Shown: one piece after another, positions 953 to 48,925 of the stretch
Numbering within the stretch: position 1 is the stretch's first letter
How the letters are laid out: the number at the start of each line of letters is the position of its first letter
Assembly: GCA_047495785.1 (NCBI GenBank)
Contig: JBLDXI010000054.1
Span: 2,914,001 to 2,978,000 of the forward strand
DNA from: Lepidodermella squamata
Lineage: Eukaryota; Animalia; Gastrotricha
Length of the DNA stretch: 64,000 bases
Direction: 5' to 3'
The notes under the pieces: generated by a model
Told to the model about the DNA's origin: nothing
What the model saw: only the letters and a program-made list of their open reading frames with translations
Databases searched by the model: none
Position numbers and translations under genes: made by a program

Positions 953-2270
953 ATGAGCACTGTTATTTTCTTGATTATGACTTATGCCTCTTGTGCTATG
1001 GCTGATTCTACGAGCGATGGCAATGATGCGACGCCTTTGATGTTCAAGGACTGCATGCTGATGCCCAGCGCTGTTGTCCCGAATTTAGCAACACCAGACG
1101 AGCAAATACTCGCCGAGTCTTCATTTTCTCTCGACACTCTCGTTGAAGTCAGTGAATTGGAAGAAGTCGTGACGCTGATGGGAGGAATATTCATCAACTT
1201 TTATTTCGGATGTTTAGCAAAATCAGCCGCTATACATAATGAAACACACGCCATTCCAACTTACGGGGTCATTACAAATCCCAATGATTACTGGCGACCA
1301 CCGATCGTCTTCATGAACAGCCGGAATGACTATGGACTAACTCAAAACGTATATCCGGCAACGATGATCTTCCCCTTTCAGGGAGTTGTGGTTTACGCAA
1401 TATCGGGATTTTTCACTCCCAGGTGCTCTATGAACTTTCAAGCGTAATTTAAGTAGTGCATCGCTTTTTCAAGATTTTACTGTAGCTTCATTTCATTTGC
1501 CAAGGTTTCCTTTTGATCAACAGACATGCACTATCAAGATCGCGCTTTGGCTATCAAGCAGGGTATTAAAAGTTAGGCAGCATATATGCTGCCTAACTTT
1601 TAATTACTTCAGTGGCCGCAGCAATTTCATTTCACCGAATCTCGGCTGGGACCTTGTCAATGCTACCAGCGAAGTAGCAGCGCCTCCATTTATGCAAGTT
1701 GATTATTATCTCATGTTAACTTCATTCACCATCAGACGCCGGCCTGACTACTTTATTCTGAACATTATCATGCCATGCTTCTTCTTGACCGCTGCTCAAC
1801 TGGTGACATTTACCCTGCCGACTGAGTCATCGGATCGTGCAAGTTTTGCAGTTACTATTCTGTTAAGTTTCACAGTAATTCAAGCTCAAGTTCAATCGAA
1901 TATTCCGAAAACACCTGTCAACATTCTAATCAACGACGTGATACAAGCTGAGTCTATTTCGGCACTTTTGGTCACTATCTACGCCGGTGTAACATGCGCT
2001 TGGTGCAGCTCGGCTCATGGAGCCGTTGAAAAGTTAACTACCATCGGCTCGAGGAAAATCCGACTTTGCCGCTTAGTAGACTTGGTTGCTGGTATCTCGT
2101 TGTTTACCTTATTGCTCGTAGTCAATGTTTCGGCTGGACTCTTGATCTATATGCTAGTTGATAGAAATAATATACTGTACTATAATCTATACCATTTAGT
2201 ACCTTTAGGTACTTGCCGATTCCGAAAAATGAAAACGAAAATGAAAAATGGTTTTTATGTGCCGTTTTAA
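953..2270 (+). CDS. Divergent Cys-loop ligand-gated ion channel subunit 1 (subfamily A); intron 1444-1504; C-terminal frameshift read-through, possibly impaired
   Basis: Signal peptide, YWRPP (WxPD-equivalent), spliced Cys-loop C-SMNFQAFPFDQQT-C (C-x13-C), pre-M1 RRRPDYF, M2 SDRASFAVTILLSFT, four TM helices. Relative to paralog 5 it has a 12-nt palindromic insertion and a 2-nt insertion that bypasses the stop near 2158. Confidence 0.88.
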
Positions 2271-2514
2271 TTGTTTCGATCTGTCAATTAAAACGAGGTA
2301 ATAGCCTAGCATAGGATATTAAGGAGCCTATATTCGTTACAATAATATACTGTACTATAATCTATACCATTTAGTACCTTTAGGTACTTGCCGATTCCGA
2401 AAAATGAAAACGAAAATGAAAAATGGTTTTTATGTGCCGTTTTAATTGTTTCGATCTGTCAATTAAAACGAGGTAATAGCCTAGCATAGGATATTAAGGA
2501 GCCTATATTCGTTA
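2166..2514. repeat. Exact tandem duplication, 2 copies, period 175 bp
   Basis: aataatatactgtactataatc...gcctatattcgtta occurs at 2166-2339 and 2341-2514. Confidence 0.9.
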
Positions 2515-2925
2515 AGGCGAACCGTAATATGAATTTTCCGGGAAGATAACCAAATCTGCTTACATCACCAATAACCCAATCACATCACAGTCAAGTATGC
2601 CGTCTGTTTGATGCGTCGAGCGTCGACCCATCCATGGCCACTCTGTCAGGAAGCATTTAAACTGCAAATAGGACCCTATTTTTTAGGGCAAACTTTTCCC
2701 CAGGGGTGCGCGGAAATCGTAGACTAAATAATGCTTAGTGATTGCTCCAGTTACGGCATAAAATTCTCGCTAAAAATCACATCCCCACATTTGCCATGCA
2801 TAACTTAGCGTATGCTTTTATGGCGTCGCTGAGAATCACGGATTTACAGATTTCAGCAAAACTAAGCAACCGTAAAATAGCAAATTTATAAAAATTCCCA
2901 GTATAAACACAGCACAATCTCAAAA

Positions 2926-4125
2926 ATGAAGAATAATGCTCTCCTCATCATCATATCAAATTTACATATCATCAGTTACGCGATGGCTGATACTGAAAAC
3001 GAAGGTGGAGACGGGACGCCATTGATGTTCAAAGATTGTATGCTGACGCCCAGTGCCGCCGTCCCGAATATGGCTTCACCAGATCGACCTGTTGCAGCTG
3101 AATCTTCATTTCTATTTGACTCGCTTGTTGAAGTCAGTGAGGTTGAGGAAATTGTCACGCTGACAGGTGGTATTTTCGTAACGTTTTACTACGACTGTTT
3201 AGCGAAATCAGCCGCCCTTCGTAATGCCACCCACATCGTTCCACCTTATGGTGTTTTAACCAACCCGAATGATTACTGGCGACCGCCGCTCATCTTTCTA
3301 AACAGTCGAAATGATTATGGACTCTCTCAAAATGTCTATTCAGCGACGTTAATGCTTCCTTTCCAGGGCGTCGTGATATACACAATATCAGGATTCTTCA
3401 CTCCCAGATGCCCCATGACATTTGAAACGTAATTACCTGCACCCATATGCATTAGCGCTCGATTATGATTGTTTTTCAGATACCCGTTTGATGAACAAAC
3501 GTGCACGATTAAAATTGCGCTTTGGCTGCCTAGCTCCGTTGTAACACTCAAGCAGCATAGTTTCACTTATTTTAATGGTCGGAGCAATTTTATTTCTTCG
3601 AATCTTGGGTGGGATCTTGTCAATGCCTCTAGCGAATTCGACGTACCACCGTTCTTGCAAATGGATTACTTTCAAATGCTGACGTCATTCACCATCAGAC
3701 GCCGGCCTGACTACTTTATACTGAACATAATCTTGCCATGTTTCTTTTTAACCGGGGCGCAATTGGTGACATTTTTGTTGCCAACTGAAGCACCGGAGCG
3801 TGCTAGTTTTGCGGTCACAATTCTCTTGAGCTTCACAGTCATTCAAGCTCAAGTTCAATCGAATATTCCGAAAACACCCGTCAACATTCTTATCAACGAC
3901 GTGATACAAGCTGAATCTATTTCGGCGTTGTTGGTAACTGTCTACGCCGGCGTTACATGTGCTTGGTACAATTCCGCATCGGTCGAAGTGATAGAAAAGT
4001 CAGTCAGCATCGGCTCAAAACGAATCAGACTCTGTCGGTTGGTGGACCTGGTCGCTTGCGCCGCGTTATTTACGTTACTGCTTGTGGTCAATCTTGCGGC
4101 TGGAATTTTGATATATTCAGGCTGA
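2926..4125 (+). CDS. Divergent Cys-loop LGIC subunit 2 (subfamily A); intron 3429-3479
   Basis: ORFs 2926-3432 and 3469-4125 join through a phase-2 GT-AG intron to give CPMTFETYPFDEQTC; M2 APERASFAVTILLSFT. Confidence 0.92.
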
Positions 4126-4925: not shown

Positions 4926-5878
4926 ATATTTTTTAATATTTTTAAATAAATTTATATCGCTATCTTTCATTTTTCATTACTTCGGATTACTTCGCTGCGA
5001 ACAGCGACGTAACAGGCGACGTAACTAGCAGTCATCGTTTCAAGTTGGAATTCAGAGTGTTATTAATTGCTCGGCTTTCGCGCAGCACCACGATTCACAC
5101 CGTGCTAGTCCCTCTTGCATTAGACCATCGGAATCGACCCAAGACGGGCGCGCAGAAAAACTCGGTGATGTAAAGTGAAGGAAGGAACGTAATATAACGC
5201 AGTGTAAACTGATGCAAACGGATGTCATTTTCGATCGAAAATCACGGATTTACATTTTACATCATTTTACAACGGTTTCCATTAACAATTGTTGAGTACC
5301 GGAGAACAAATATATTGGCTATGTAAATATCACTGTAAAATCGAAACGTAGTCACTTGTAGCCTGTATAATTAGCAGCTGTTTTAATTATAATACCTTAT
5401 TAGAGCTCAGAAGCAATTTTGCTCAGCTTATTCTTATTATATTATGACGTTAGAACTTTAAGCCCGATGAATCCCAGCGCCGGATTCCAAGCCCATAGCG
5501 GTCGAAAAGCTGAAAATAGATATGATTCTGGACGCTTTCAATACATTCCAGCTTCGACCTGGCTTCATCTCGCATGTTATACTTCGGCATTTTGCTGTCT
5601 GAGAAAAAAGATGGCTTCGGTATATACACAGCTGAAAAGGCTCATCGTCGCCATCTTGAATGCACATTTTTCTCAATATTCAGGCGCTTAATATGAAATT
5701 TTATTTTTTGCTCACTTTTTACCGTTTTTTAATTGGTGTGCTCGTTAGGCTCATAAAATTCATATTTGCAGACTGCGCCGCTGAATCCATTCGAGGAGCT
5801 GTATATTTACATTTTGACACTTAGTGTCTGCCGTGCAAGCTTCAGTTTTTATCAAAATTGATTTTCCGACACTGCGAA

Positions 5879-7078
5879 ATGATTCGCTACTTAGCGTATT
5901 TCGTAACCCTTCTCGTCATTGCTTGTTGCTCTGTGAATGAATCCGAGAGCGATGAAGACATCATACCGACTATCTTGAGACAATGCAAGCTAACGCCAGG
6001 TGCTGTCGTTCCGAATCGTGCGAACCCAGGAATACCTGTAGTTGCTGAATCGCAATTCTCGCTGGACACGTTAGTGGAGGTCAGCGAGGTGGAAGAAGTG
6101 GTAACATTGACTGGTGCCATCTTTGTGACTTTTTACTTCGATTGTGTTGCAAAAGCTGCTGAAAAGTACAACAGCTCTAACGCCGTTCCAGACTACGGCA
6201 TCATTACTAACACCGACGACTACTGGCGCCCACCGATAATCCATATGAACAGCAGATATGACTACGGGTTAACGCAAAATGTCTATCCAGCAACGATAAT
6301 CCTACCGTTTCAGGGCGCCATGATCTACTCGCTTTCTGGCTTCTTCACGCCAAGGTGTTCTATGAAATTCGAAACGTTAGTGGATTCTTATATGAACATT
6401 TTAAACTTGATATATTACAATTGATAATCCAGATACCCTTTCGATCGACAGACGTGTGAATTAGATATTGCCTTATGGCTGCCTCGCAACGTCATCACGA
6501 TGAAACATCACGACTTCGTATACTTAGAGTCAAAAGATTCGTTCATTTCAAATAATCTCGGCTGGTACCTTGATAGCGCAAACAGCAGCCTGGAGACACC
6601 TCCGTTTCTCAATGTTGACTATCATATGATGAAGACAAGCTTTACAATCAAACGTAAACCGGTGTACTTTGTCCTGAATATTATCATGCCGTGCTTCTTT
6701 TTGACTTGCGCAACAATGGTGACTTTCGCCCTCCCTACGGAAGCCCCCGAACGAGCAAGTTTCGCGGTAACTATCCTGCTTAGTTTCACGGTCATTCAAG
6801 CTCAAGTTCAGACGAATATCCCGAAGACGCCGATGAACATTCTGATCAACGACGTGATTCAGGCCCAATCAATTGCTGCCCTGCTGGTAACAATATACGC
6901 AGGGGTTACATGTGCTTGGTATGATTCATTCCAAGAAAAGGCGGAGAAAATCATTACCGTCTGGTCGAAGAAAATTCGACTTTGCCGGTTGATTGATTTG
7001 ATATCAGCGTCTATTTTATTCACTCTGATATTAACTGTTAATGTAGTTTGTGGTGTTTATCTGATAGTTCTGTATTAG
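5879..7078 (+). CDS. Divergent Cys-loop LGIC subunit 3 (subfamily B); intron 6376-6432
   Basis: Spliced Cys-loop CSMKFETYPFDRQTC; M2 APERASFAVTILL; four TM helices. Confidence 0.92.
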
Positions 7079-7139
7079 GCTCTATTGACATTGAAATAAG
7101 AAATAAAACCCCGTGAAAATCAGGACATCAGCGTGCATC

Positions 7140-9977: not shown

Positions 9978-11177
9978 ATGATTCGCTACTTAGCGTATTT
10001 CGTAACCCTTCTCGTCATTGCTTGTTGCTCTGTGAATGAATCCGAGAGCGATGAAGACATCATACCGACTATCTTGAGACAATGCAAGCTAACGCCAGGT
10101 GCTGTCGTTCCGAATCGTGCGAACCCAGGAATACCTGTAGTTGCTGAATCGCAATTCTCGCTGGACACGTTAGTGGAGGTCAGCGAGGTGGAAGAAGTGG
10201 TAACATTGACTGGTGCCATCTTTGTGACTTTTTACTTCGATTGTGTTGCAAAAGCTGCTGAAAAGTACAACAGCTCTAACGCCGTTCCAGACTACGGCAT
10301 CATTACTAACACCGACGACTACTGGCGCCCACCGATAATCCATATGAACAGCAGATATGACTACGGGTTAACGCAAAATGTCTATCCAGCAACGATAATC
10401 CTACCGTTTCAGGGCGCCATGATCTACTCGCTTTCTGGCTTCTTCACGCCAAGGTGTTCTATGAAATTCGAAACGTTAGTGGATTCTTATATGAACATTT
10501 TAAACTTGATATATTACAATTGATAATCCAGATACCCTTTCGATCGACAGACGTGTGAATTAGATATTGCCTTATGGCTGCCTCGCAACGTCATCACGAT
10601 GAAACATCACGACTTCGTATACTTAGAGTCAAAAGATTCGTTCATTTCAAATAATCTCGGCTGGTACCTTGATAGCGCAAACAGCAGCCTGGAGACACCT
10701 CCGTTTCTCAATGTTGACTATCATATGATGAAGACAAGCTTTACAATCAAACGTAAACCGGTGTACTTTGTCCTGAATATTATCATGCCGTGCTTCTTTT
10801 TGACTTGCGCAACAATGGTGACTTTCGCCCTCCCTACGGAAGCCCCCGAACGAGCAAGTTTCGCGGTAACTATCCTGCTTAGTTTCACGGTCATTCAAGC
10901 TCAAGTTCAGACGAATATCCCGAAGACGCCGATGAACATTCTGATCAACGACGTGATTCAGGCCCAATCAATTGCTGCCCTGCTGGTAACAATATACGCA
11001 GGGGTTACATGTGCTTGGTATGATTCATTCCAAGAAAAGGCGGAGAAAATCATTACCGTCTGGTCGAAGAAAATTCGACTTTGCCGGTTGATTGATTTGA
11101 TATCAGCGTCTATTTTATTCACTCTGATATTAACTGTTAATGTAGTTTGTGGTGTTTATCTGATAGTTCTGTATTAG
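9978..11177 (+). CDS. Divergent Cys-loop LGIC subunit 4 (subfamily B), protein identical to subunit 3; intron 10475-10531
   Basis: ORF translations match those of 5879-7078 (offset 4099 bp). Confidence 0.92.
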
Positions 11178-14780: not shown

Positions 14781-15980
14781 ATGAAGCAGAACTTTATTAT
14801 TTTCATGCTAAAAAATATTGTTACCTTTGCTATCTCTGATTCTACAAGCGATGGCAATGATGCGACGCCTTTGATGTTCAAGGACTGCATGCTGATGCCC
14901 AGCGCTGTAGTCCCGAATTTAGCAACACCAGACGAGCAAATACTCGCCGAGTCTTCATTTTCTCTCGACACTCTCGTTGAAGTCAGTGAAGTGGAAGAAG
15001 TCGTGACGCTGACGGGAGGTCTATTCCTCAACTTTTATTTCGGCTGTTTAGCAAAGTCTGCCGCTATACATAACGAAACACATAGAATTCCAACATACGG
15101 GGTCATTACAAATCCCAATGATTACTGGCGACCACCGATCGTCTTCATGAACAGCCGGAATGACTATGGACTAACTCAAAACGTATATCCGGCAACGCTG
15201 ATCTTCCCCTTTCAGGGAGTTATCGTCTACTCGATATCGGGATTTTTCACTCCCAGGTGCTCCATGAATTTCCAAGCGTAATTTGAGCAGTGCAGGCTTT
15301 TTCAAGATTTTACTGTAGCTTCATTTCATTTGCCTAGGTTTCCTTTTGATCAACAGACATGCACTATCAAGATCGCGCTCTGGCTATCAAGCAGGGTTTT
15401 AACTATTAGGCAGCATACTTACAACTACTTCAGTGGCAGCAGCAATTTCATTTCATCGAATCTCGGCTGGGACCTTGTCAATGCTACCAGCGAAGTAGCA
15501 GCGCCTCCATTTATGCAAGTTGATTATTATCTCATGTTAACTTCATTCACCATCAGACGCCGGGCAGACTACTTTATTCTGAACATAATCTTGCCGTGTT
15601 TCTTCTTGACCGCGGCTCAACTGGTGACATTTACCCTGCCAACTGAGGCACCGGAGCGGGCTAGTTTCGCAGTTACAATTCTGTTAAGTTTCACAGTAAT
15701 TCAAGCCCAAGTTCAGTCAAACATTCCCAAAACACCTGTCAACATTCTTATCAACGACGTGATACAAGCTGAATCTATTTCGGCGTTGTTGGTAACTGTC
15801 TATGCTGGCGTCTCATGTGCTTGGTACAACTCGTCTAATGGAGACGTGGAAAAGTTGATTAGCGTCGGCTCGAGAAAAATTCGACTTTGCCGCTTGATTG
15901 ACCTTGTTGCTGGTATCACGTTGTTCACCTTATTACTCGCAGTTAATGTTTCGGCAGGTTTCTTAATCTATTCTAGTTGA
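14781..15980 (+). CDS. Divergent Cys-loop LGIC subunit 5 (subfamily A, closest to subunit 1); intron 15278-15337
   Basis: Spliced CSMNFQAFPFDQQTC; M2 APERASFAVTILL; ends LIYSS-stop. Confidence 0.92.
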
Positions 15981-18378: not shown

Positions 18379-19576
18379 ATGATTCACTACTTGGCATGTT
18401 TCAAAGCTCTTCTCGTCATTGCTTGTTGTTCTGCGAATGAATCCGAGAGCGATGAGGACATCATACCTATCATCTTGAGACAATGTAAACTAACGCCAGG
18501 CGCTATCGTTCCCAATCGAGCGAACCCGGAAAAGCCTGTCTTTACTGAATCACAATTTTCCCTGGACACGTTAGTTGAGGTCAGCGAGGTGGAAGAAGTG
18601 GTCACCTTAACAGGTGGCATCTTTGTGACCTTCTATTTTGATTGCGTAGCAAAGGCTGTCGAACAGTACAACAGCTCTTTCGCGATACCCGACTACGGCA
18701 TCATTACTAACACCAATGACTACTGGCGCCCGCCGATCATCCATTTGAACAGCAGATATGACTACGGGTTAACGCAAAATGTCTACCCAGCAACGATAAT
18801 CATGCCATTTCAGGGCGCCATGATATACTCGCTTTCTGGTTTCTTCACGCCAAGGTGTTCCATGAAATTCGAAACGTTAGTAGATTATTCAGAAAAGTTA
18901 ACAGTTGAAATATTATAATTGACGCTGTAGATACCCTTTTGATCGACAGACGTGTGTATTGGAAATTGCCTTATGGCTGCCTAGCAAAGCGATAACGATG
19001 ATAAGTCACAATTTCCTATACTTCAAATCAAAGGATGCGTTCATTTCAGATAATCTCGGCTGGTACCTTGATAGCGCAAACAGCAGCCTGGAGACACCTC
19101 CGTTTCTCAATGTTGACTATCATGTGATGAAGACAAGCTTTACAATCAAACGCCGACCGGTGTATTTTGTCCTCAATATTATCATGCCATGCTTCTTTTT
19201 GACTTGCGCAACAATGGTGACATTCGCCCTCCCTACGGAAGCCCCTGAGCGAGCAAGTTTCGCGGTAACCATCCTGCTTAGCTTCACAGTCATTCAAGCT
19301 CAAGTTCAGACAAATATCCCGAAGACACCGATGAACATTCTGATCAACGACGTGATTCAGGCCCAATCAATAGCAGCCCTACTGGTGACAGTCTACGCTG
19401 GGATCACTTGTGCTTGGTATGATTCATTCCAGGCAAAGGCCGAGAAAATCATTAACATCTGGTCGAAAAAAATTCGACTTTGCCGATTGATTGATGTGAT
19501 ATCAGCGTCTATTTTATTCACTCTGATACTAATTGTTAATATCGTTTGTGGTGTTTATCTGATAGTTCTGTATTAG
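18379..19576 (+). CDS. Divergent Cys-loop LGIC subunit 6 (subfamily B); intron 18876-18930
   Basis: Spliced CSMKFETYPFDRQTC; M2 APERASF. Confidence 0.92.
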
Positions 19577-21101: not shown

Positions 21102-22300
21102 ATGATTCGCCTCGTAGCTATTCTCAACGCTATTCTCGTCATCGCTTCATGCTCTTCGGATGAAAGCGGTAGTGACGAGGACATCATACCAACTATCTTG
21201 AAACAATGCAAGCTAACGCCCGGCGCTGTCCTTCCGAATGGAGCAAACCCAGAAAAACCTGTATTTGGCGGATCGCTGTTTTCCCTGGACACGTTAGTTG
21301 AGGTCAGCGAAGTGGATGAAGTAGTCACACTAACAGGCGGCATGTTTGTAACAATCAACTTTGATTGCGTCGCAAAGGCCGCTGCAAAGTACAACATATC
21401 TGACGCCATTCCAAACTACGGCATTATCATTAACGTCAATGACTACTGGCGCCCGCCGATTGTCCATATGAACAGCAGATATGACTACGGGCTAACGCAA
21501 AATGTCTACCCAGCAACGTTTGTGTTTCCAGCTCAGGGTGCTATAATGTACTCGCTTTCTGGCTTCTTTACACCACGGTGTTCAATGAAATTTGAAACGT
21601 TAGTAGATCGTACTAGTTTCGCAAAAAGAATTTTAATCCTCTATCCTATACTAGCTATCCTTTCGATCGACAGACCTGTGAACTAAAGATCGCTGTATGG
21701 CTGCCAAGTAAGGCTCTCACGATTATGGCTCACAACTGCGTATTCTTCGTATCAGCAGATGCGTTCATTTCCAGTAATCTTGGCTGGGACCTTGATAGTT
21801 ATAATAGCAGCATGGAGAGTCCTCAATTTCTCGGTGCTGACTATTACTTGACGAAAACAACATTCACAATTAAACGTCGACCAGCTTATTTTGTTCTCAA
21901 TATCATCATGCCATGCTTATTTTTGACATTTGCTACAATGGTGACATTCGCCCTGCCGACGGAAGCCCCCGAACGAGCAAGTTTCGCGGTAACTATCCTG
22001 CTTAGTTTCACGGTCATTCAAGCTCAAGTTCAAACAAATATCCCAAAAACACCGATGAACATTCTGATCAACGACGTCATTCAGGCCCAATCAATTGCTG
22101 CTCTGCTGGTGACAGTCTACGCAGGGATCACTTGTGCTTGGTATGAATCATTCCAAGAAAAGGCCGAGAAAATCATTACCATCTGGTCGAGGAAAATTCG
22201 ACTTTGCCGCTTGATTGATTTGATATCAGCGTCTGTTCTATTCACTGTGGTACTCATTGTTAATATCGTTTGCGGTGTTTATCTGATAGTGCTGTATTAG
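21102..22300 (+). CDS. Divergent Cys-loop LGIC subunit 7 (subfamily B); intron 21599-21654
   Basis: Spliced CSMKFETYPFDRQTC; M2 APERASF. Confidence 0.92.
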
Positions 22301-22521: not shown

Positions 22522-23837
22522 ATGTGGAGATTTAGAGCCTGCCTGGTTGCCGTATTACTGGCTACTGATAATTACGAACAAACTTCTGCGGCTGATGACG
22601 ATGAAGACATCAGGAAGGTTGTGTTTCGAGAATGTAACATGCTGCCATCTGCAACTAGTCCGACTGAATTTTTACGCAAGCCTCAACCTGCTATGGGATC
22701 CTTTATGTTCATGCGATTTGTTGAACTGGACGATGTTTCGGAGACTTTCACGCTTCTAGGAGGCGTCGCTTTGGGTTTCCCAGTCGAATGCATAATGAAC
22801 GCTGCCATTCGTTACAACAGTTCTGGTCGTATTGTACCACCTCATTGGATGATGACAAATGCCAAGGATTACTGGCGCCCTCCTATTGTTCAGCTTAATA
22901 GGTAAAGCTTTCACAGGAGAGTTGCGGAGAATGACTTTATTACTTATTTCAATAGCCGATCTGATTATGGAATGAACAAGGACATTTTCCCGGTTATTAT
23001 GACGTTTCCGTTTCAAAACGGATACGTGCAATATGTTATCACTGGACCCTTCACTTCGACATGCAAGATGGATTTCTACAAATTTCCATTCGATAAGCAA
23101 AGCTGCAATATGACATTCGTAAGACATCAGCGATAGTAATTTAATTGATGATTTCAGCCTGTGATTTTCATCAGGCGCTATGGCTGACTCCTGAAATGCT
23201 GTATTTGATATCATTTGATTCCCAATTTATGGATGGCAACGGCAAAGACTTCATATCGGAAAATCTAGGCTGGGATTTAATGGGTAACATCACAAGCGAC
23301 AGTAAAATCGTTTACAGCGGAGGATCTAGTTACTACCAGCTTGATGTCAACTTGAAATTCAAACGCCGACCTCTATACTTCGTAATGAACATCATAGCTC
23401 CATGCTACATACTAACCATAATTCAACTCGCTGCGTTCTTCGTCCCTCCTGAGGAACCAGATAGAAGCAAGTCAGTTGTTTGGCTCATTCTATGATTGGG
23501 GGTTTAATTTGATTGTTTTCATAGTTTCGCCGTTACAATTCTGCTGGCCTTTACTGTTCTTCAAGGTTCAGTGGCAAATAACATACCGAAAACTCCTCAG
23601 AACATCTTGCTTGTGGATATAATTATGGGAGAAACGATATCAACTATGCTGGTTACTTTCTACTCGGTGATAACGTGCGCCTACCCGGATTCATTTCGCA
23701 AAAAGGCCGAGAGAATCGTCACAGTGTTTGGGATTCATGCTCGGCACTGCCGTGCCATCGATGTTTTTGCTTTCATTTTCACAGCCTTCACGATGACAGT
23801 TCTGAACAGCGTAATTTTGTGCATAATGATGGGCTGA
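22522..23837 (+). CDS. Divergent Cys-loop LGIC subunit 8; introns 22902-22955, 23119-23174, 23471-23524
   Basis: YWRPP, uninterrupted Cys-loop CKMDFYKFPFDKQSC, RRPLYF, spliced M2 EPDRSNFAVTILLAFT. Confidence 0.88.
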
Positions 23838-24060: not shown

Positions 24061-25384
24061 ATGATTTTACCTACGCTGATAATTTTCGCTGTACTGGTTA
24101 ACGTGCTGAATGCGGCCGCTGCTACCTCGACGCCGGCACCAATAATTTACCTTAATGATGACTTGAAAGAGTACTTCCGCAATGAATGCCATCTATTACC
24201 TGAAGTCACATGCCCGAACGACTTTGATGTTCCGAAAAGACCTCTTCCAACGACAGTTTCAATGGTTCTTTCCAGTTTTGTGGAAGTAGACGACCTACAC
24301 GAAACGCTGGTTCTTTCTGGAGCCATACATTTTTCGATCACCATGGATTGCATTAAACGTTTGGCATTCAAGTTGAACAAAACGCAATACGTCCCTCCGA
24401 ATTGGGTGATTACAAATCCAGATGAATATTGGCACCCGCTGTTGACTCACATGAATAGGTATGAGCTATCAAAGTTATTGAATCAGATTATTAATAGCTC
24501 ATTCTTTTTCAGTCGCTACGATTACGGCTTATCGAACGACGTGTTTTTGAGCATAATGATGTATCCTTTCGAGGGACAATACAGCTACACAATATCGGGT
24601 TTGTTCAGCTCCATGCTGCGGGTCAACTTCAAACAATTTCCATGGGGCATCACTAATGCTCAGATGAATGTAATTTTTCTGATGAAAATATTAAGGTTCA
24701 CGTCTGACTTCATCATTTCAGTTTGGGATATGGCAATCAAATGGAATGCTAGGTATAAATTTGACAAATCCTGAAGTCTATTACTCTGACGGAAAAGAAA
24801 ACTTCATTTCGAGCAATGCCGGCTGGAATCTAGGCAATGTATCCGCGAAAGTGTTTATGCATGAAAATGCCGGCCCAGACGGTTTCAACTACTACGAAGT
24901 TGTCGTGGAGTTGAATTTGGATAGAAGACCGGATTACTACGTCATCAACATCATCGCACCATGCTTGGTTCTAACTTGCGCTCAACTCGCATCCGTTGGA
25001 ATTCCGCCAGACTTGGCTGCAAGACCAGCGTATTATACTCCGAATTTCATTGCTACTTTACTACTCATTTTTGCTAGGCTATCTGTGACAATATTGCTAT
25101 CATTCACCTTAATTCAAGCAAGTGTTGTTAGCAACATCCCGAAAACACCTGTGGACATAAAATTGAGCGATTTGATCCTCGGCGAGATGATGCTCGCAAT
25201 GCTGATCACATTCTACACCGCAGTCATGGGCGCTTGGACAGATTCTTACCCAGAGTTGGCTGAAAAAGAAACGAGTCTGGGTTGCCGGCGCTCTCGGCTG
25301 GTCGACGCATTAGCTTTTGTTGCGTTTCTGTCAATTGCCGTAGCCTTGAATCTTGTTTTTATTAGAGCTATGTTTTTAGGCTGA
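24061..25384 (+). CDS. Cys-less pentameric LGIC subunit 9; introns 24459-24512, 24670-24721, 25030-25077
   Basis: YWHPL; the Cys-loop region reads L-RVNFKQFPWGITN-A; RRPDYY; spliced M2 DLAARPALSVTILLSFT; PKTP; M4. Confidence 0.85.
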
Positions 25385-27545: not shown

Positions 27546-28774
27546 ATGCCGATATTATTCTTCATGATATTAACGTTGATATCATGCGTCCATTGTGAAA
27601 CTGGTAATGACGATATTAAATATCGAATTTTCGAGGAATGTAATCTTCTGCCATCTGCAACCACCCCAAACGAGCGCAACCAGTCGGCACCGCCTACGCC
27701 GTTGGATATCACTTTCATGTTCATCCGACTGGTGGACGTCGATGATGTAGCAGAGACCCTAACTATCACTGGAGGCTTCTTCCTCCAGTTCAATATACCT
27801 TGCGTTGCCGAAGCCGCGAAACGATACAATGAAACACGTTACGTGAAGGAGAACTGGATGATAACGAACACCAACGAATACTGGCGTCCACCGTATGTTC
27901 ACGAGAACAGCCGTTTCGATTACGGGCTGGGCAAAGATCTTTACTTGGTCATACTTGTAGAGCCATTCAAAGGCCTCGTGAAATATGGCGTGACAGGATT
28001 CTTCACTCCAAACTGTGAATTCAACTTCGAGAGGTAGGACTCTTCGTTTAAATCACGAGTAACTCAACAATTCTTAGGTTTCCATACGATCGCGAAAATT
28101 GCTCAATTGAACTGCAAGTCTGGCTGGCCTCAACTGACGTTAAAACCACATCACTGGGGGTCTTTTTCCTCGAAGGCGAAGAGAATTTCATAACTTGGAA
28201 TCTAGGATGGGATTTCCGTGGATACAGCGCATCCCATAGAGTTCGGCCGTTCCCACCTGTCGACTACGTAGCTGCCTCAATCTCAGTAGCTATTCAAAGA
28301 AGACCCTTCTACTTCATCTACAACTTGCTGGTGCCGTGTTTCCTCCTGTCCATTGTCCAATTAGCTGCATTCTTCATACCACCTGAGGCACCAGATAGAG
28401 CAACGTGAGATTCTGATATTACTTTCTCTGTCAAGAATTATTTGTCTCCATTCAGATTTGCTGTAACAATTTTGCTGAATTTCACTCTACTTCAGTCGCA
28501 GGTGCAAAATAATTTGCCAAAAACACCGGAGAACATCCTGATTTCAAACATGGTTTTTTGTCAAACAATCTCTGCCATGTTTATTACTCTATACAGTGCC
28601 GTAACTAATGCGTGGGTTGAGTCGTACCCCGCGGCTTCGGGTAAAAAGATGAAGCTTATCTGCTGCAAGGCGAGATATTGCAGGGTTGTTGATGGCATTG
28701 TGATGGCATTTGTTCTAACATTTTTAATTGTCGCTAATTCGACTCTTGGTATTAAAATGGCTGTGGGCGATTGA
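27546..28774 (+). CDS. Divergent Cys-loop LGIC subunit 10 (subfamily C); introns 28034-28077, 28405-28455
   Basis: Spliced CEFNFERFPYDRENC; M2 APDRATFAVTILLNFT. Confidence 0.9.
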
Positions 28775-30775: not shown

Positions 30776-32018
30776 ATGATGCAAACGTTTTATTTACCTT
30801 TAATATTATCATGGGTGTCGTCTTCTCTATGCGACTCTAAAAGTGATGACGTTAGATATCGAATTTTCGAGGAATGCAATCTTTTGTCAGCCGCAACCAG
30901 CCCAAATGAGCGCGACCAATCAGCACTGCCTACGCCGTTGGATATCACTTTCATGTTCATTCGACTGGTGGACGTCGATGATGTAGCAGAGACCTTAACT
31001 ATCACTGGAGGCTTCTTTCTCCAATTCAACATATCTTGTGTAGCCGAAACTACGCAACGTTACAGTGAAACGCGATACGTGAAGGACAAGTGGCTGATAA
31101 CGAATACCGACGACTATTGGCGACCGCCGTATGTTCACGAGAACAGCCGTTTCGATTACGGCTTGAATAAAGATCTCTTCCCAGTAATCCTGGTGGAGCC
31201 ATTCAAGGGCCTGGTAACATTTGGCAATACAGGATTTTTTACCACTAGCTGTGAGTTCGACTTCGAGAGGTAAGAAGAATGAGTCAAGAATGAGTTATTT
31301 GAATCAAGCTTATAAGGTTTCCATACGATTACGAAAATTGCTCCATTGAACTTCAAATCTGGCTAACTACTTCTGAGGCCATAACCACGTCTCTGAAAGT
31401 CTTTTTCCTCGAAGGCGAGGATAATTTCATCTCTAAAAATCTGGGTTGGAAGTTCCTCGGATATAACGCAATACATAGGGTTCGGCCATTCCCGCCGTTC
31501 GACTACGTAGCCGCGTCAATCTCGATTTTAATTCAAAGACGTCCTTTCTACTTCGTATACAACTTACTGGTGCCAGGATTTTTGCTTGCTATCGTCCAAT
31601 TGGCTGCATTCTTCATACCGCCTGAAGCACCTGATAGACCAACGTAAGATTTGAAAGTGTGTTTCTTGATGATATTTTTATTTGTAAGCATTCTGTCACC
31701 ATTAGATTCGCTGTTACAATATTGCTGAATTTCACAGTGCTTCAGACGCAGGTGCAGAATAACTTACCGAAAACCCCCGAGAACATCCTGATTTCAAACA
31801 TGATATTTTGCGAAACTATTTCTGCCATGTTCATTACTATTTACAGTGCTGTAACCAATGCGTGGGTTGAATCGTATCCGGGAATTGCCGGGAAAAAGAT
31901 GGTCTGTTGTGGTTTGAATGCGAGATATTGCAGAGTTGCTGATGCCATAGTAATGGCATCTGTTTTAACATTTTTAATAGTTGCTAATGCAACTCTCGGC
32001 TCGAAAATGGCTTTGTGA
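30776..32018 (+). CDS. Divergent Cys-loop LGIC subunit 11 (subfamily C); introns 31270-31316, 31644-31705
   Basis: Spliced CEFDFERFPYDYENC; M2 APDRPTFAVTILLNFT. Confidence 0.9.
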
Positions 32019-33133: not shown

Positions 33134-34375
33134 ATGCACGTAAAATTGGTGATAATAGTGTTATCGATTACATTGGGCATATATTGCGAAACTGGCAACG
33201 ACGACGTCAAATTCCGAATTTTCGAAGAATGTAATCTATTACCGTCGGCAACAAGTCCGAACGAGCGTGACCAACCGGCGATACCAACTTCAATGGACAT
33301 AAATTTTATGTTTATCCGACTGGTGGACGTCGACGATGTTGCAGAGACCCTAACTATCACAGGCGGCTTCTTCCTCCATTTCAACATTTCCTGTGTTGCC
33401 GAAGCCGCGAAGCGATACAATGAAACACGTAATGTGAAGGAGAATTGGATGATAACGAATACCAACGACTACTGGCGGCCGCCGTATGTCCATGAGAACA
33501 GTCGATTTGATTACGGCTTGACTAAGGACCTTTACTCGGTCATACTGGTCGAGCCATTCAAGGGTCTCGTTAAATATGGCGTGACTGGATTTTTCACCCC
33601 GAGTTGCGAATTCAACTTCGAAAGGTATGAATAGCGTTTCTCGATACTTTTTTAAATGAAATTCTAGGTTTCCATACGATCGGGAAAATTGCTCGATAGA
33701 ACTGCAAGTCTGGCTGTCCTCATCAGACGTTAAAACCACGTCATTGGGGGTGTTCTTTCTGGAGGGAGAAGACAATTTCATATCGCCGAATCTTGGCTGG
33801 AAATTCTTGGGCTACAACGCAAGGCATAGAATCAGGCCGTTTCCTCCCATCGACTACGTAGCCGCCTCAATCTCAGTAGCCATTCAAAGAAGACCATTCT
33901 ATTTTATCTACAACCTGCTAGTACCATGTTTTCTACTCGCCATCGTTCAATTAGCTGCATTCTTCATCCCGCCTGAAGCACCAGACAGACCAACGTAAGA
34001 TCCAAAGGATTTATATCTCTACTTTCATAGATCGAATATTTTCTGCTTAGATTTGCTGTAACGATATTACTGAACTTCACGGTACTCCAGGCGCAAGTTC
34101 AGAACAACTTACCGAAAACCCCGGAGAACATCCTGATTTCAAACATGATATTTTGTGAAACCCTCTCTGCCATGTTTATCACTCTCTACAGCGCTATAAC
34201 CAATGCTTGGGTTGAATCTTACCCCGATACTGCAGGGAAAAAGATCAAGATTCTATGTTGCGGCTGTAAAGCAACATATTGCCGGGTGGTTGATGGTATA
34301 GTTATGGCATTTGTTTTAACATTTCTAATTGTTGCAAATTCGACTCTTGGTATTAAAATGGCGTTAGGTGAATGA
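33134..34375 (+). CDS. Divergent Cys-loop LGIC subunit 12 (subfamily C); introns 33625-33667, 33995-34050
   Basis: Spliced CEFNFERFPYDRENC; M2 APDRPTFAVTILLNFT. Confidence 0.9.
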
Positions 34376-40375: not shown

Positions 40376-41691
40376 ATGAGCCTGGTAAATTTAGTGCTCG
40401 CACTCCAGCAGTTGGTGCTGCTTAGTTGGTGTCTAAGCAATGAAGATGACGTGAAATCTCAGATTTTACGGGAATGCAACTTCATACCAGGCGCGACCCA
40501 TCCGAATGAATACAACACCACCGCCCCACCAACACCCGTTGACATCTCTTTTGGCTTTCTTCGTCTGGCTGCTGTTGATGACACGCGAGAAACAACAACA
40601 GTGACAGGGTATTTCAATATTCAATTTCATTTGGAATGTCTCCGAGCGGCAACGCATCGTTTCAATCAAACTCGTACGGTTTCTCCATTTTGGTGCTTCA
40701 GCAATACAGATGATTACTGGAAACCAGGCATAGTATTAGAAAATAGGTTTGGGTTCTTATGCATTATCACCTGTGTTATTTAAAAGTGCTCGAATTTAGC
40801 AGCGACGATTTTGGGATTCAAAACATTCAACCATCTTTGACTGGTTTCCCTTTCGAGGGAAGAATTCAATGGACTTTAACTGGGCTTTACTCAGCTTTCT
40901 GTGACATGGATTTCGAACGGTAGCGCAAAAAAATCGACAAAATCTCTTGCCTTATAACGAAAATGCTTTCTAATGTAGATTTCCAATAGATCAACAGCTC
41001 TGTTCCATTGTTATCGATGTATGGATGAATAACGATTCCATGCAAGTAAAGTCGATTTACAGCTTTGTACAACCCAGTGCTCTTAATGTAACGACTAAGA
41101 ACGTCGGATGGGCACTTGGGGATAGACGGGAGTCTTACGCTATACTGCCATACAGCACAACGAACTTTCACTCATTCACCTTTCATTTCACCATAACAAG
41201 AGAGCCGCGCTACTTCATCCTCAATATTGTCGCACCCTGCTTCGTTTTGATGGCAGTTCAGCTAGTCGGAGGATTCCTGCCCCCTGAGACGGCTGAGAGG
41301 TCCAGGTATACTACGACAAAAAGCTCAATGCTGCACAAGCATCCACCTTACTTTCTTGTATTTCAGCTTTGCTGTGACCGTCCTGCTGAGCTTCACGGTG
41401 ATTCAAAGCCAAGTTCTGTCGAATTTCCCGAAAACATCAGCCAACATCTACTTGTCAAATCTCACTTTCGGCCTACTGATTTTCTCAATGGTTATAACAG
41501 CTTACTCAGCCTTAACTTGTGCCTTATGTGAATCTTCGGAGGCTTATGCGTCCAAGCTCGTTGTGTTGGCACGAGGTCGAAAAACGATTCGGTTATGCCG
41601 ACTCGTTGATATCTGCTTCTTTCTTGCGATGCTTTTGATTATCACTATTTTCAGCTTGACTCTTCTTTGGCTCATAAGAAACGGGGATTGA
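40376..41691 (+). CDS. Divergent Cys-loop LGIC subunit 13; introns 40747-40799, 40920-40978, 41306-41366
   Basis: YWKPG, spliced CDMDFERFPIDQQLC, REPRYF, M2 TAERSSFAVTVLLSFT. Confidence 0.88.
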
Positions 41692-42191: not shown

Positions 42192-42900
42192 ATGGCAACA
42201 CAGCCCTCGGCTCAGCCAAGGGGAAGCTTTGCAAGAGGGGCCGAGAAGGGCTTGGCGTTATTCTCTGCATTCGAGGCCAAGCACGTTATAGTTCCTGTTT
42301 TGGCCTATCTTCTTTTCAGGTGAAGTTCACCGTTTAGTCTTTGAAAAATGCAATTTTATTGTTTTAAGCTGGGTGAATGAGTATGAACCCGATGGTATCT
42401 ACATTGATGCACCAGATTCAGCCGAGCTACGCTGCCAGTGGCGGTATTGGAACTTACTGCGGCATTTGAGAATAGTTACGCAGATCAACGCGATGGAGCG
42501 GCTCAACCGGTTTTACTTCCTCGAACTTACAGAAACAGCCATGGCTTGTCCTGAAACTGAGTACATCCTCGATGAACATCTCAAGAAGTTTTCCAAATTT
42601 GCAAAGATACGAGACCAATTGAACACTGAAATCATCGAAATTCACAAAAATGGAACGACGAATAATGCTACAATCGCGGAGGTGTCCAGACCGTATTTCT
42701 CCAACGTTGAACCGTCCGAGGAGCTGTGCCAGGTCGTTTTTCATTATCTAACATGGACAGATCACGAGTTGCGGAAACATTTATGGTTTTCATGGCAATT
42801 TCACAACTTTTTCTTGAATAAGATGGAACACCATCCTATGGCTACTGAAATTATGTTCGGCCTATTCTCGCTACTTGTTACTAAAATCATTTTTAAATAA
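42192..42900 (+). CDS. Uncharacterised membrane-associated protein, paralog 1; intron 42320-42368
   Basis: Spliced ORF MATQPSAQ...VLAYLLFSWVNEYE...; clear paralogy with the next gene (CQWRYWNLLRHLR, AMACP, NFFLN.MEHHP). Confidence 0.75.
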
Positions 42901-43267: not shown

Positions 43268-44241
43268 ATGGACTTAATTCAACGGAGCGTGATCTTGCTT
43301 CAAATTTTGCTGTTTTCAGCTTTGAGGTAAGGCATTTAGGGTGTTTCTCAACCGTATTACTGCGCTTAGAGTGTTATGCTCCCCAAACATGGTTTATGAG
43401 GCATTTTGAATTACCCCGATTATAGTTACTACTATAAATTGAGTTGCAATAGCGGCATGGCACTCACAGAACGGTAATACGGTAACTATGGTACATCTTA
43501 GTCTAGATTTGCAGAGTCAAAGTCCAACTATTTTTTGCTTGGATGGTCGATATGATACGTAGCATCAATGGTGCTCGGCAGCACGCGATTCTTTGTTTTC
43601 CTTAATATTGCTTATGAAAAATCACAACTGCATATCCCTCCACCGTGACCGACCCAGCTAAACACAGTTAGACTGTGACACTGCAAATCTGGACGAGAAT
43701 GCTAGATATCTAAAGATTTTCTAATTTTCACAGCTGGATAACGAATTATGATTTTGACATCGTCTACAGCGATGACAGCAACAATACAGAACTGCTGTGC
43801 CAATGGAGATATTGGAATCTGCTACGGCATCTCCGACAGATGCATCTCACCAAAATGGAAGAAATGTACAACAAATTGTACATGCTAGAAATGGCAGAGG
43901 CTGCGATGGCTTGCCCAAACATCCGCTACATTTTAGACGAGCATCTGCTTAAATTGAAGAAATACGCCAAGATAAGACGGAAGCTCAACTCGAAACTATC
44001 TGTTCTTCAAGGTGATAAGTCGAACAAGGTTATCTACTTCCCGAACGTAGATCCCACTGAAGAAATGGCTCAAGTTGCCTTTCATCACATTCATTGGACT
44101 GATCGAGAGATACGGAGTCATTTATGGACGTCGTGGCAAGTTTATAATTTCTTTCTCAACAGAATGGAACATCATCCTCTTGCTGCTGATATTATTTTCG
44201 GACTTCTTACAATCTTTCTAACTAAAGTGATTTTCGCATGA
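43268..44241 (+). CDS. Uncharacterised membrane-associated protein, paralog 2; intron 43327-43733
   Basis: MDLIQRSVILLQILLFSALS/WITNYDFD...CQWRYWNLLRHLR...; same intron phase and position as paralog 1. Confidence 0.7.
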
Positions 44242-45735: not shown

Positions 45736-47018
45736 ATGTTGCTTTTATACTTCTTACTTTCGATCAGCCAGGCTGTTAATTCGGAAGACAGTGTCCAGAC
45801 ACAAATTTTGAAGGAATGCCGCTTCATTTCCTCTGTCAGCCATCCGCTGGATAACAATAGAACTGCAGAGCCGATTCCCACGAGAGCTGGGTTTGGCTAT
45901 CGACGACTAGTTGGCGTAGACGATAGGGAAGAAAAAATTATGATCAATGGCCTTTTCTTTGTCGAATATCAGCTCAACTGCCTCCGTGAGAAAGCGCTCG
46001 CTTACAATCGAACCCGGAATGTGCCAGAGTTTTGGACGATCTCGAAGAATCTGGACGAGCTTTGGCGCCCATATTTGGGCCTTGAAAATAGCCAAGAGGA
46101 CTACGCTATGAATCAATTCATCACATCATCCATCACCGTTTTCCCATTTCAAGGAAAAATCTACCACAACTTCGTTGGAGAATTCATCGTCTTCTGCGAC
46201 ATGGATTTCAAAAAGTTGGAATAATTTCATTGCATGAACTCTGTATGAACTCTTCTTGTTAGGTTCCCATCCGACTCACAATTTTGCATGCTTTCCATTG
46301 AACTCTGGCTTGACAATAGATCTCTGTCTATGGAGTCGATTTTCAGCTTCATCCAACCGAGTAGCTTAGGACTTAAGTCAAAGAACACCGGATGGAATTT
46401 TGTTGGTCGCTCAGAGAATTTTGCGATTAAGCCATATGCTTTGCAAACGAATTACCACGTTTTCATGTTCTGCTTTAACATCGAGCGTGAGGCGAGCTAT
46501 TACATTACAAATATCATAAGCCCTGGTTTCATGCTGCTTCTAACGCAATTCGCAGGTGGCTTCCTTCCAGCAGATGCTCCGGAACGTGCAAGGTAAACAT
46601 CGCTTTATTCAGTTAGATTTACCAAAATTCTAACTTTAACGCTGGCTTTAGCTTCGCCGTGACGGTTATGCTGAGTTTTACGATTACCCAAGGCCAAGTC
46701 CTGGAGAATTTCCCGAAGTCATCAGCTGAAATTCTGCTCTCCAATTCAGTTTTTGCACAAATGGCGTGTGCTTTGTTAATCACAGCTTACTCAGCCATAA
46801 TGAGTGCCGTTTGTGACTCTGATCCTGATTACAGCCAGCGTTTCGTTCGAATGAAATGCACCGCGAAGCCGCTTAAATTGCGCCTGGTTCGCCTTGTGGA
46901 CATTTTGTTTTTCGGTTCAGTTGCCCTTGTATATGCGATGTTTTCATTGCTATACATCACACCCTACTATTTCCCTATCTATCCGCAAAACTCAACCCGA
47001 CTATGTGGCTCTCCTTGA
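45736..47018 (+). CDS. Divergent Cys-loop LGIC subunit 14 (subfamily D); introns 46215-46262, 46593-46651
   Basis: LWRPY, spliced CDMDFKKFPSDSQFC, M2 APERASFAVTVMLSFT. Confidence 0.88.
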
Positions 47019-47639
47019 GAGTATGCCTGTAGATGTCTGCAGATGGAAGGGCAAGCCAGATGAATGAAATGACCATTTTACTTTATTTCATTTGCTTGAT
47101 AAAATGCACAAAAATGATAAAAATAAAGAAACGCATACATCCTATGTCCTGTAGGGAATAAGCCTCACGAGGCTCGGTTTAGCCTGAAAGCAAGGCACCT
47201 ACCCATTGCATCACCATCAATCCGATGGCATACATCTTTGCCGTCCTCATCTGTTGCTGCTACGAGGTTCGATCCACATGTCATCAAGAGTATTTGGGAT
47301 TTTCGAAATAAAACACCGATTAACCGAATTGAAACACCGATAAAACCTATTATTAAACTGAGCTGGATCATGACCCTGAAAAATAAATTTTTCCAGTGAC
47401 TCAAAATTCCTTTGTAGTTTCCAAAAAATTTCCTTCGTTGACTGCTTGCAACCGGCTTGGAATATCATGGTCTCGTCAGTCTAGTTTTTCGAGTTTGAAA
47501 AATAAAATTGATCAAAACCACTTTGCAGCGATTCAAAGTGGATGCGTTTTGTATGGCTTATGTGTATTAATAATTTATCGAAAAGTGATAAAATACTGGC
47601 AAGAGTTGAATTACGCCCGAAATATACAGACACAAAAGG

Positions 47640-48925
47640 ATGATCAACGTTTTAGCTTTTTATTGCTTATTGGCATTCAGCCGCTATCTTAGTGCGCAAG
47701 ACAGTGTTCAGACACTGATTTTGAAAGAATGTCGCTTCGTTTCCTCAGTCAGTCATCCACTTGATAACAACAGAACGGCCGAGCCCATACGTGCTCGTGC
47801 TGGGTTCGGCTATCGTCGGCTAGTCGGAGTCGACGACAGGCAAGAGAAGGTTATGATTAATGGTCTCTTTTTTGTGGAGTATCAACTTGACTGCCTGCGT
47901 GAGAAAGCGATCGCTTACAATCGAACTCAAAACGTCCCAGAGTTTTGGACAATCTCCCGGAATCTCGACGATTTTTGGCGCCCATATTTCGGACTTGAAA
48001 ATAGCCAAGAGGATTACGCCATGAGCCAGTCCATCACTTCTTCCATCACCGTTTTCCCGTTCCAAGGAAGGATTTCACACATTTTCGTTGGTGAATTCGC
48101 TGTGTTTTGTGACATGGATTTCAAAACGTAATTAGTTTATTTCAAGAAGGATTGTGTGACTGAATTATCCGATTTTCCAGATTCCCCTCTGATGAACAGT
48201 TCTGCATGATTTCCATCGAGCCTTGGTTGGACAACAGATCTCTTTCGGTAGAATCTATATCAAGCTTTATCCAGCCAAGCAGTCTCTCAGTTAAGTCTAA
48301 AAACACTGGGTGGCTTTTGATGAGTCGTTCGGAAAATTTCGCAATCTTGCCATACGGTTTGCAGACAAATTACCACGTTTTCATGTTTTGCTTCCAAATC
48401 AAGCGGGAATATGGCTATTACGTTTCTAACATCATCCTGCCTGGTTTTATGCTACTTTTGGCAGCATTTGCGGGAGGATTCCTGCCGCCTGATGCACCAG
48501 AAAGAGCAAGGTAAAACCGACAATCACTCTGCTGTGATCAATTTAATTGATCTCTTTTCAGCTTCTCTGTAACAGTCATGCTAAGTTTCACGGTAGTTCA
48601 AGGTCAAGTCCTGGAAAATTTTCCCAAGTCATCGGCCGAATTTTTGCTGTCAAGTTCTATTTTTGCGCAAATGGGCATCGCTTTCTTCATCACAACTTAT
48701 TCAGCTATAATAAGTGCCGTCTGTGACTCCTATCCGAGTTACGTCGAGCGTTTTGTTCACCTGAAGTGCATGGCCAAGCCGCTGAAGTTACGTGTCTGCC
48801 GCCTGGTTGACATTTTGTTCTTCACTGCAGTTGCGATCGCATTCCTGATTTTCACCTTCAGCAACACCACTCCCGAAACTTTTGATTTGAAACAAAACTC
48901 AACCATGAAATGTGGCTCGCGTTAA
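47640..48925 (+). CDS. Divergent Cys-loop LGIC subunit 15 (subfamily D); introns 48128-48180, 48511-48561
   Basis: FWRPY, spliced CDMDFKTFPSDEQFC, M2 APERASFSVTVMLSFT. Confidence 0.88.

Follow-up and report, generated by a model that had tools for sequence, protein, structure and literature searches.

A window of 64,000 nucleotides from the gastrotrich Lepidodermella squamata (the whole stretch of DNA analysed here: GenBank assembly GCA_047495785.1, contig JBLDXI010000054.1, positions 2,914,001 to 2,978,000 of the forward strand) carries 15 genes for ion channels of the pentameric ligand-gated type (pLGICs) between its positions 953 and 48925. Their sequences suggest that they probably encode 15 working cation-channel subunits of the broad nicotinic/5-HT3-like branch, with a near-zero intracellular domain, an extra pair of cysteines and no pocket for acetylcholine (ACh).

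A tblastn search of the exon translations against the window returned exactly 15 loci, all on the plus strand, as had been claimed in an initial annotation made from the letters of the sequence. The grouping into four multi-copy subfamilies (A, B, D and F, with three, four, three and two genes) and three singletons was likewise recovered, and so was the range from identical to highly divergent copies, pairwise identity running from 100% (g3 and g4) down to 29%. The description as a tandem array holds for the co-orientation of the 15 genes but not for contiguity, as unrelated genes and elements interrupt the series. The Pfam families Neur_chan_LBD and Neur_chan_memb were matched on the exon translations. 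The window, with a G+C content of about 42%, is eukaryotic in character; each gene is split by one to three GT-AG introns of 43-62 nucleotides, in agreement with the short introns noted before. Exon junctions were placed at GT..AG pairs that left the frame open and gave back the sequence present in intron-less paralogs, and introns occupy three sites, one following loop A, one within or immediately behind the Cys-loop and one in the loop between M1 and M2. All 15 spliced models form one uninterrupted open reading frame (ORF) from ATG to stop and encode proteins of 377-393 residues, g1 with 418 residues being the exception. The genes are as follows.

953..2270, plus strand: g1, subfamily A, 418 residues; exons 953-1443, 1505-2270
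2926..4125, plus strand: g2, subfamily A, 382 residues; exons 2926-3428, 3480-4125; Pfam Neur_chan_memb at 2e-09
5879..7078, plus strand: g3, subfamily B, 380 residues; exons 5879-6375, 6433-7078
9978..11177, plus strand: g4, subfamily B, 380 residues, coding sequence identical to g3; exons 9978-10474, 10532-11177
14781..15980, plus strand: g5, subfamily A, 379 residues, 88% identical to g1; exons 14781-15277, 15338-15980
18379..19576, plus strand: g6, subfamily B, 380 residues; exons 18379-18875, 18931-19576
21102..22300, plus strand: g7, subfamily B, 380 residues; exons 21102-21598, 21655-22300; junction found in RNA
22522..23837, plus strand: g8, singleton, 383 residues; four exons 22522-22901, 22956-23118, 23175-23470, 23525-23837
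24061..25384, plus strand: g9, singleton, 389 residues; four exons 24061-24458, 24513-24669, 24722-25029, 25078-25384
27546..28774, plus strand: g10, subfamily D, 377 residues; three exons 27546-28033, 28078-28404, 28456-28774
30776..32018, plus strand: g11, subfamily D, 377 residues; three exons 30776-31269, 31317-31643, 31706-32018
33134..34375, plus strand: g12, subfamily D, 380 residues; three exons 33134-33624, 33668-33994, 34051-34375
40376..41691, plus strand: g13, singleton, sister to subfamily F, 380 residues; four exons 40376-40746, 40800-40919, 40979-41305, 41367-41691; acceptor of intron 1 ambiguous between 40799 and 40802 (a difference of one residue)
45736..47018, plus strand: g14, subfamily F, 391 residues; three exons 45736-46214, 46263-46592, 46652-47018; start codon taken as the first ATG of the open frame
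47640..48925, plus strand: g15, subfamily F, 393 residues; three exons 47640-48127, 48181-48510, 48562-48925

Binding pocket, pore and linker of the encoded proteins

Motifs were checked by regular expressions and in an alignment of the 15 proteins, and positions of the human muscle nicotinic ACh receptor (nAChR) subunit alpha1 were transferred through a HMMER alignment of the family profile. Each protein begins with a signal peptide and a short segment that closes in an invariant cysteine, and a second invariant extra cysteine stands at the end of strand beta2. Loop A reads W-R-P-P in the 15 proteins, and the position of alpha1 Tyr93 is taken by M, L or E, so the loop-A tyrosine is indeed gone from all copies. 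A Cys-loop of the form C-x13-C with an F/Y-P-F/Y-D core is present in 14 of the 15, the exception being g9. The loop-B tryptophan (equivalent to Trp149) is found in 15 of 15, although its spacing within C-x13-C-x6-W, once thought universal, holds in 14. Similarly, a loop-C tyrosine had been ascribed to every copy; the Tyr198 position is indeed Tyr in 14 but Phe in g13. The family consensus has no aromatic residue at the Tyr190 position, and a vicinal Cys-Cys pair at loop C, already reported as missing, occurs in none of the 15 window copies and none of the 100 family members aligned. Thus only the equivalents of Trp149 and Tyr198 are retained from the aromatic box, Tyr93, Tyr190 and Cys192-Cys193 being gone.

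The channel-forming part, on the contrary, is strongly preserved, and conservation across the 15 proteins is highest in M2 and the M2-M3 loop. The pre-M1 Arg, the M2 0' Arg and the 9' Leu are invariant in all 15 copies and 85 other relatives, and M2 also carries a -2' Pro and a 6' Thr. The -1' position is Glu or Asp in 14 copies, which would make these of the cation type as judged from the motif, and Ala in g9. The conserved Trp that closes M3 and the conserved Asp that opens M4 are separated by 22-29 residues; the linker is thus short in every copy, though somewhat longer at its upper end than the 20-25 or so residues proposed originally.

In all three members of subfamily D (g10-g12), a Cys-Cys pair occurs in this short cytoplasmic linker at about protein position 341, which may be a lipidation site.

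A conventional nAChR alpha subunit was considered and dismissed for want of the loop-C Cys-Cys, a complete aromatic box and a long M3-M4 domain with an MA helix.

How such subunits might work can be proposed from the gating and pore elements conserved in the superfamily. Five subunits, alike or mixed, would assemble around one pore, and a small molecule would bind at the ectodomain interface formed by loops A-C of one subunit and D-F of the next. The contact between the Cys-loop and the M2-M3 loop would then open the pore, with the 9' Leu as the gate, and the ring of -1' Glu/Asp would confer cation selectivity. With so short an M3-M4 linker, the part that serves synaptic anchoring and trafficking in the classical receptors would be gone, and a non-synaptic or peripheral action would therefore be favoured.

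Relatives of the family and history of the cluster

Placement relative to the classical receptors was judged by the bit-score ranking of the family profile against solved chains, 321 pLGIC chains being matched. The best were muscle nAChR alpha1 (110 bits), followed by alpha7 and alpha4 and then 5-HT3A (89 bits). When 1.8 billion cluster representatives were searched exhaustively with HMMER, 161 proteins reached E<=1e-30, and the best 150 of them score 124-526 bits, above any classical receptor (<=110 bits); word-indexed searches, started from part of exon 2 or from the alignment of the family, gave only P0001 and P0002. Most of the best 150 are 360-410 residues long and match the profile from end to end, and a short linker is therefore common to them. 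The closest relatives of the window proteins, at 37-49% identity, are encoded by intronless genes on metagenomic contigs, and 25 of the 30 clusters looked up come solely from metagenome assemblies of the ENA. The named relatives are gene models of the bivalves Mactra, Tegillarca and Pinctada and of the hemichordate Glandiceps, in which two to four tandem units are fused. The window's own proteins are not among the protein collections searched.

One hundred full-length family members (the 15 of the window and 85 others) were aligned to one hidden Markov model, with the following traits.

Loop-C vicinal Cys-Cys: in none of the 100 family members
9' Leu: in all 100 family members
-1' Asp or Glu: in 90 of the 100 family members
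Both extra cysteines: in every one of the 25 close-clade members and in most of the remaining 75
M3-M4 linker: median length of 25 residues among the 100 family members

Given that the short linker, the extra pair of cysteines and the absence of the Cys-Cys motif extend across these members, the stripped-down design is a trait of the broad family. The suggestion that it was specific to this lineage has to be abandoned, as about 100 relatives from other organisms share it.

The same architecture is found in an AlphaFold model of P0002, a relative 47-49% identical to g8 (mean predicted local distance difference test score 95). It comprises a short helix at the N-terminus, another of 12 residues immediately behind the second extra cysteine, the beta-sandwich, four transmembrane helices and about 19 non-helical residues in the M3-M4 linker. 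A Foldseek search with this model retrieved nAChR, 5-HT3, GABA-A and GluCl chains, with TM-scores (template modelling scores) of 0.7-0.8 to nAChR chains. By sequence and by this model, the window proteins are members of the pLGIC superfamily.

Among receptors of known structure, the vertebrate muscle and alpha7 nAChRs and 5-HT3A are the best matches in sequence and fold and share the Cys-loop, the FPFD core, the loop-B Trp, the acidic ring at -1' and the 9' Leu. However, identity to them is only about 16-21%, the window proteins lack the Cys-Cys, the equivalents of Tyr93 and Tyr190, the MA helix and the intracellular domain, and they have in addition an N-terminal cysteine pair and a helix after strand beta2. 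Alpo4 of Alvinella pompejana, an orphan nAChR-like receptor that remained without a ligand after wide screening (PMC10338036), resembles them in standing between nAChR and 5-HT3, in lacking the loop-C vicinal disulfide and in keeping the loop-B Trp. It differs in its long intracellular domain (residues 308-412 unmodelled), where the window proteins have about 20-25 residues, and lies outside the top 60 solved chains. The prokaryotic GLIC and ELIC share a minimal build in which M3 and M4 are joined by a very short linker, whereas the window proteins have the eukaryotic Cys-loop disulfide, signal peptides, introns and best scores against animal nAChRs.

Could these nevertheless be ordinary transmitter-gated receptors, synaptic or extrasynaptic, with an unconventional pocket for choline, betaine, amines or ACh bound in a non-alpha manner? 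Their place within the cationic nAChR/5-HT3 branch would suit such a role, as would the loop-B Trp and one loop-C aromatic residue kept in all copies. Nematode orphan LGCs without the Cys-Cys motif proved to be gated by amines, ACh or betaine, which counts in the same direction. PMC8536830 was pointed to beside this gating of nematode orphan LGCs. Yet only two of the five positions of the aromatic box are kept and the Cys-Cys is absent, the intracellular domain for synaptic clustering is missing, and fifteen copies exceed what is typical for one transmitter. Moreover, one-to-one orthology with conserved transmitter receptor subunits, which would have spoken against the proposal of a separate family, was not found, the classical receptors reaching at most 110 bits against 124-526 for the 150 short orphans. 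The transmitter-gated alternative is accordingly improbable, and the profile scores and pocket motifs agree with the initial view of expanded, non-cholinergic-looking nAChR-like subunits.

The history of the cluster was followed in a quick (100 rows) and a careful (37 rows) maximum-likelihood tree. The 15 window genes lie inside one clade of 24-25 sequences (support 100/99) together with the metagenomic P0001-P0007, P0010 and P0011. Three groups within it are monophyletic, each with 100/100: A+B with 7 genes, D with 3 and g13+F with 3; the subfamily F clade (g14, g15) has 100% support. The two remaining genes have partners elsewhere: g8 is sister to P0002 (98/94) and g9 to P0005 (99/98). P0002 and P0005 are themselves adjacent, intronless and in the same order and orientation as g8 and g9 on a metagenomic contig (L003, 122-2608; 4.1 kb), so that the micro-synteny of g8-g9 (22522-25384) is kept across 37-49% protein identity. 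A tree uniting all 15 window genes was rejected by the approximately unbiased (AU) test (p=0.0006), with the caveat that this grouping was chosen after the first tree had been seen.

Since monophyly of the 15 is rejected and g8 and g9 pair with P0002 and P0005, the sequences point to a cluster with an old core, founded by at least five lineages (A/B, D, g8, g9 and g13/F), that was later enlarged in this lineage. The number of synonymous substitutions per site (dS) between close pairs is 0 for g3/g4, 0.28-0.6 for g1/g5, g3/g6 and g6/g7, and up to >1 for others, and duplication has therefore gone on over a long time. The idea of a lineage-specific expansion is thus borne out for the recent duplications (A+B, D and F at 100%) but not for g8 and g9 with their orthologue-like partners. 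In the same way, the births of a birth-and-death process are evident in these clades, while death is barely visible. A lenient search of the window found no further significant fragment outside the 15 loci except a marginal one at 41791-41957, just downstream of g13, whose weak match (E=0.012) to g13 residues 304-362 may mark it as what is left of a dead copy. Introns are absent from the metagenomic relatives, and the window genes have up to three tiny ones.

The founders, in at least five lineages, would thus have been followed by tandem duplication in this lineage and one gene-conversion event, that of g3 and g4. The two are 100% identical over 1233 nucleotides (5861-7093 and 9960-11192), a tract that takes in the coding sequence and the intron together with a few bases of the flanks, and the 230 nucleotides upstream of it are about 75-80% identical with many indels. 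Gene conversion is proposed because the identical tract is so sharply bounded by a diverged upstream flank; a fresh duplication or a simple assembly duplicate was rejected, as the same flank fits conversion instead.

Among the other odd copies, g9 has both Cys-loop cysteines replaced (by Leu and Ala), FPWG in place of FPFD, and Ala at -1'. The supposedly uniform Cys-loop set therefore has to be corrected to 14 Cys-loop genes and one Cys-less gene. The missing first Cys-loop cysteine, the FPWG and the -1' Ala recur in P0005; by this comparison g9 is an old, conserved odd subunit, perhaps with a changed ion selectivity or with an accessory function. In g1, an insertion of 4 residues in loop F bears a Cys-Cys pair, and the C-terminus is extended by 40 residues. 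A perfect 174-nucleotide tandem duplication (2166-2339 and 2341-2514) stands beside the start of this tail; similarity between g1 and g5 stops at about 2163 and the normal stop is replaced, hence the tail.

The cluster as a whole belongs to an already described phenomenon, that of intron-poor tandem arrays of orphan nAChR-like genes (PMC6896357). Massive expansions of this kind, with arrays of up to 12 genes, were reported in molluscs and annelids (Jiao 2019; PMC6896357), with expression linked to development, stress and immunity. The likeness lies in the tandem arrays, the few or absent introns, the high sequence diversity, the orphan status of the receptors and the bivalve origin of the nearest named relatives; the window differs in its 15 genes, in having 1-3 tiny introns per gene and in that all are of the short-linker type with the extra cysteine pair.

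Selection, transcription and possible functions

Pairwise ratios of nonsynonymous to synonymous substitution (dN/dS, Nei-Gojobori) over the mature protein are 0.05-0.20, and the copies are therefore under constraint; dS is saturated between subfamilies. When members of one subfamily are compared, the ectodomain has a larger share of variable columns than the membrane domain (Fisher p=4e-4). This share peaks in loops B, C and F and the M3-M4 linker and is lowest in M2 and the M2-M3 loop, and the earlier impression that ectodomain loops vary more than M2 is thus sustained. By region, dN/dS is 0.14-0.58 in loops B+C+F and 0.03-0.13 in the membrane domain; the comparison of loops with transmembrane segments that had been called for thus came out higher for the loops, though never above 1. 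Such a pattern fits a strongly conserved channel in which part of the pocket has evolved in a relaxed or locally diversifying way.

Evidence of transcription comes from contigs of one public RNA run (X1) mapped to positions 21001-27000. Joints at 21598/21655 in g7, 23118/23175 in g8 and 24458/24513 in g9 coincide exactly with predicted introns, which shows transcription and splicing for these three genes at least. The word depth at the g7 junction is 20-25; across g7, g8 and g9 depth ranges from 3 to 25, against 84 in an unrelated minus-strand neighbour. Run X1 gives no coverage of introns or intergenic sequence within 21001-27000, while a second, genomic-DNA-like run covers everything there and is without such joints.

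These data bear on the thought that the cluster holds mostly redundant young duplicates that individually do little and are on their way to becoming pseudogenes, or else channels that open in response to protons, ions or other physical cues and not to organic ligands. The identity of g3 and g4, the disturbed 3' end of g1 and the lack of detection of g10-g12 in the one RNA run would each be in keeping with it. Short-linker pLGICs such as the bacterial GLIC are proton-gated, a further point on this side. Against this, the oddities of g9 are conserved in its orthologue-like partner P0005, spliced transcripts were found in all three genes examined, all 15 ORFs are intact and dN/dS stays at 0.05-0.2 even in old pairs with dS >1. 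This alternative is very improbable as a whole, and a reading of the copies as pseudogenes was rejected on the intact ORFs and the low dN/dS.

Several points nevertheless weigh against taking the 15 genes as working, ligand-diversified cation channels without an ACh pocket. RNA support is limited to g7, g8 and g9, and g10-g12 fell below the threshold of detection in run X1, which is no evidence of silence. Ion selectivity and gating are read from motifs alone, we infer the disulfide joining the two extra cysteines from their invariance, and the structure model is that of the 47-49% identical relative P0002 and of no window protein. Further, the six binding loops pooled do not differ significantly in variability from the rest of the ectodomain (p=0.14), and dN/dS exceeds 1 in no region in the pairwise comparisons. 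Ligand diversification among the copies is therefore suggested rather than demonstrated.

With the differences among copies greatest in loops B, C and F and smallest in the pore, the array would constitute a repertoire of receptors with differing ligand preferences and the same channel output. One use of such a repertoire could be peripheral chemosensation, in which outward-exposed sensory cells would detect food, conspecifics or environmental molecules much as the chemotactile receptors (CRs) of cephalopods do, but from an independent origin. The tandem amplification, the lost ACh pocket, the concentration of variability in loops B, C and F on a constant pore, the short linker without synaptic-anchoring sequence and the precedent of nAChR-derived chemoreceptors (PMC11526382) all speak for it. 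On the other hand, dN/dS is below 1 everywhere tested, in contrast to the strong diversifying selection reported for the pocket of octopus CRs (PMC11526382), and the related bivalve expansions are tied to stress, immune and developmental expression instead (PMC6896357). A chemosensory role is thus possible and can be advanced only tentatively.

The cephalopod CRs (van Giesen 2020, Allard 2023, Kang 2023; reviewed in PMC11526382) are, like the window proteins as far as sequence can tell, duplicated nAChR-like pentameric cation channels without ACh binding. CRs are marked by expression in peripheral sensory cells and by gating through external, hydrophobic molecules. They differ in their diversifying selection, of which the window copies gave no evidence, and neither a CR chain nor an Alpo chain is among the 60 best of the 321 solved chains for the family profile. 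There is therefore no sign of a specific relationship to CRs, which is consistent with the separate origin assumed from the start, and the analogy is reasonable in the sense of 'works like'. The fuller proposal, of a peripheral chemoreceptor repertoire of nicotinic-like origin, independent of the cephalopod CRs and built on a scaffold without an intracellular domain that is common to bivalves, hemichordates and unlabelled microscopic eukaryotes, is doubtful.

If these proteins did prove to be sensors of external chemicals, they would represent another independent turn from transmitter receptor to chemoreceptor. Earlier cases are the insect ionotropic receptors (IRs), derived from ionotropic glutamate receptors (iGluRs), and the cephalopod CRs, derived from nAChRs. 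Moreover, a naturally minimal eukaryotic pLGIC of about 380 residues without an intracellular domain would be attractive for structural work and ligand screening. Even without a sensory role, the cluster points to a sizeable short-linker branch of the Cys-loop receptors, mostly hidden in unannotated genomes and metagenomes, and among its members is a conserved subunit, g9, that lacks both the Cys-loop cysteines and the acidic ring and would be of interest for ion selectivity.

Neighbouring genes and elements

The interruptions of the array comprise a single-exon short-chain dehydrogenase/reductase (SDR) gene between g13 and g14, with no relative above 38% identity, and several of the features below. 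Downstream of the array lie genes for a gamma-glutamyltranspeptidase, a sulfotransferase and an OTU protein, together with two large multi-pass membrane protein genes.

7160-8400, minus strand: decayed reverse-transcriptase ORFs in several frames, between g3 and g4
25447-26610, minus strand: intron-less gene for a 387-residue membrane protein with a signal peptide and a C-terminal transmembrane helix, between g9 and g10
34613-35648, 35996-36820 and 39350-40156: three paralogous DXD glycosyltransferase-like genes (PF04488), between g12 and g13
36833-38564, plus strand: reverse-transcriptase ORF of a retroelement, between two of the glycosyltransferase-like genes
42373-42900 and 43840-44241: two ORFs, paralogous to each other and without a Pfam family, that end in a common hydrophobic tail and stand between g13 and the SDR gene
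51447-53913 and 54674-57522: tandem pair of paralogous genes whose products are large multi-pass membrane proteins carrying a big domain at the N-terminus
61998-62469 and 63267-63739: inverted repeat of 473 nucleotides, 89% identical, flanking an OTU-like protease ORF

The protein of 25447-26610 belongs to no Pfam family, and its gene has the highest RNA depth (84) in the stretch examined. No Pfam match was obtained on the 539-residue exon of the pair at 51447-53913 and 54674-57522, whose products look receptor-like from their sequence.

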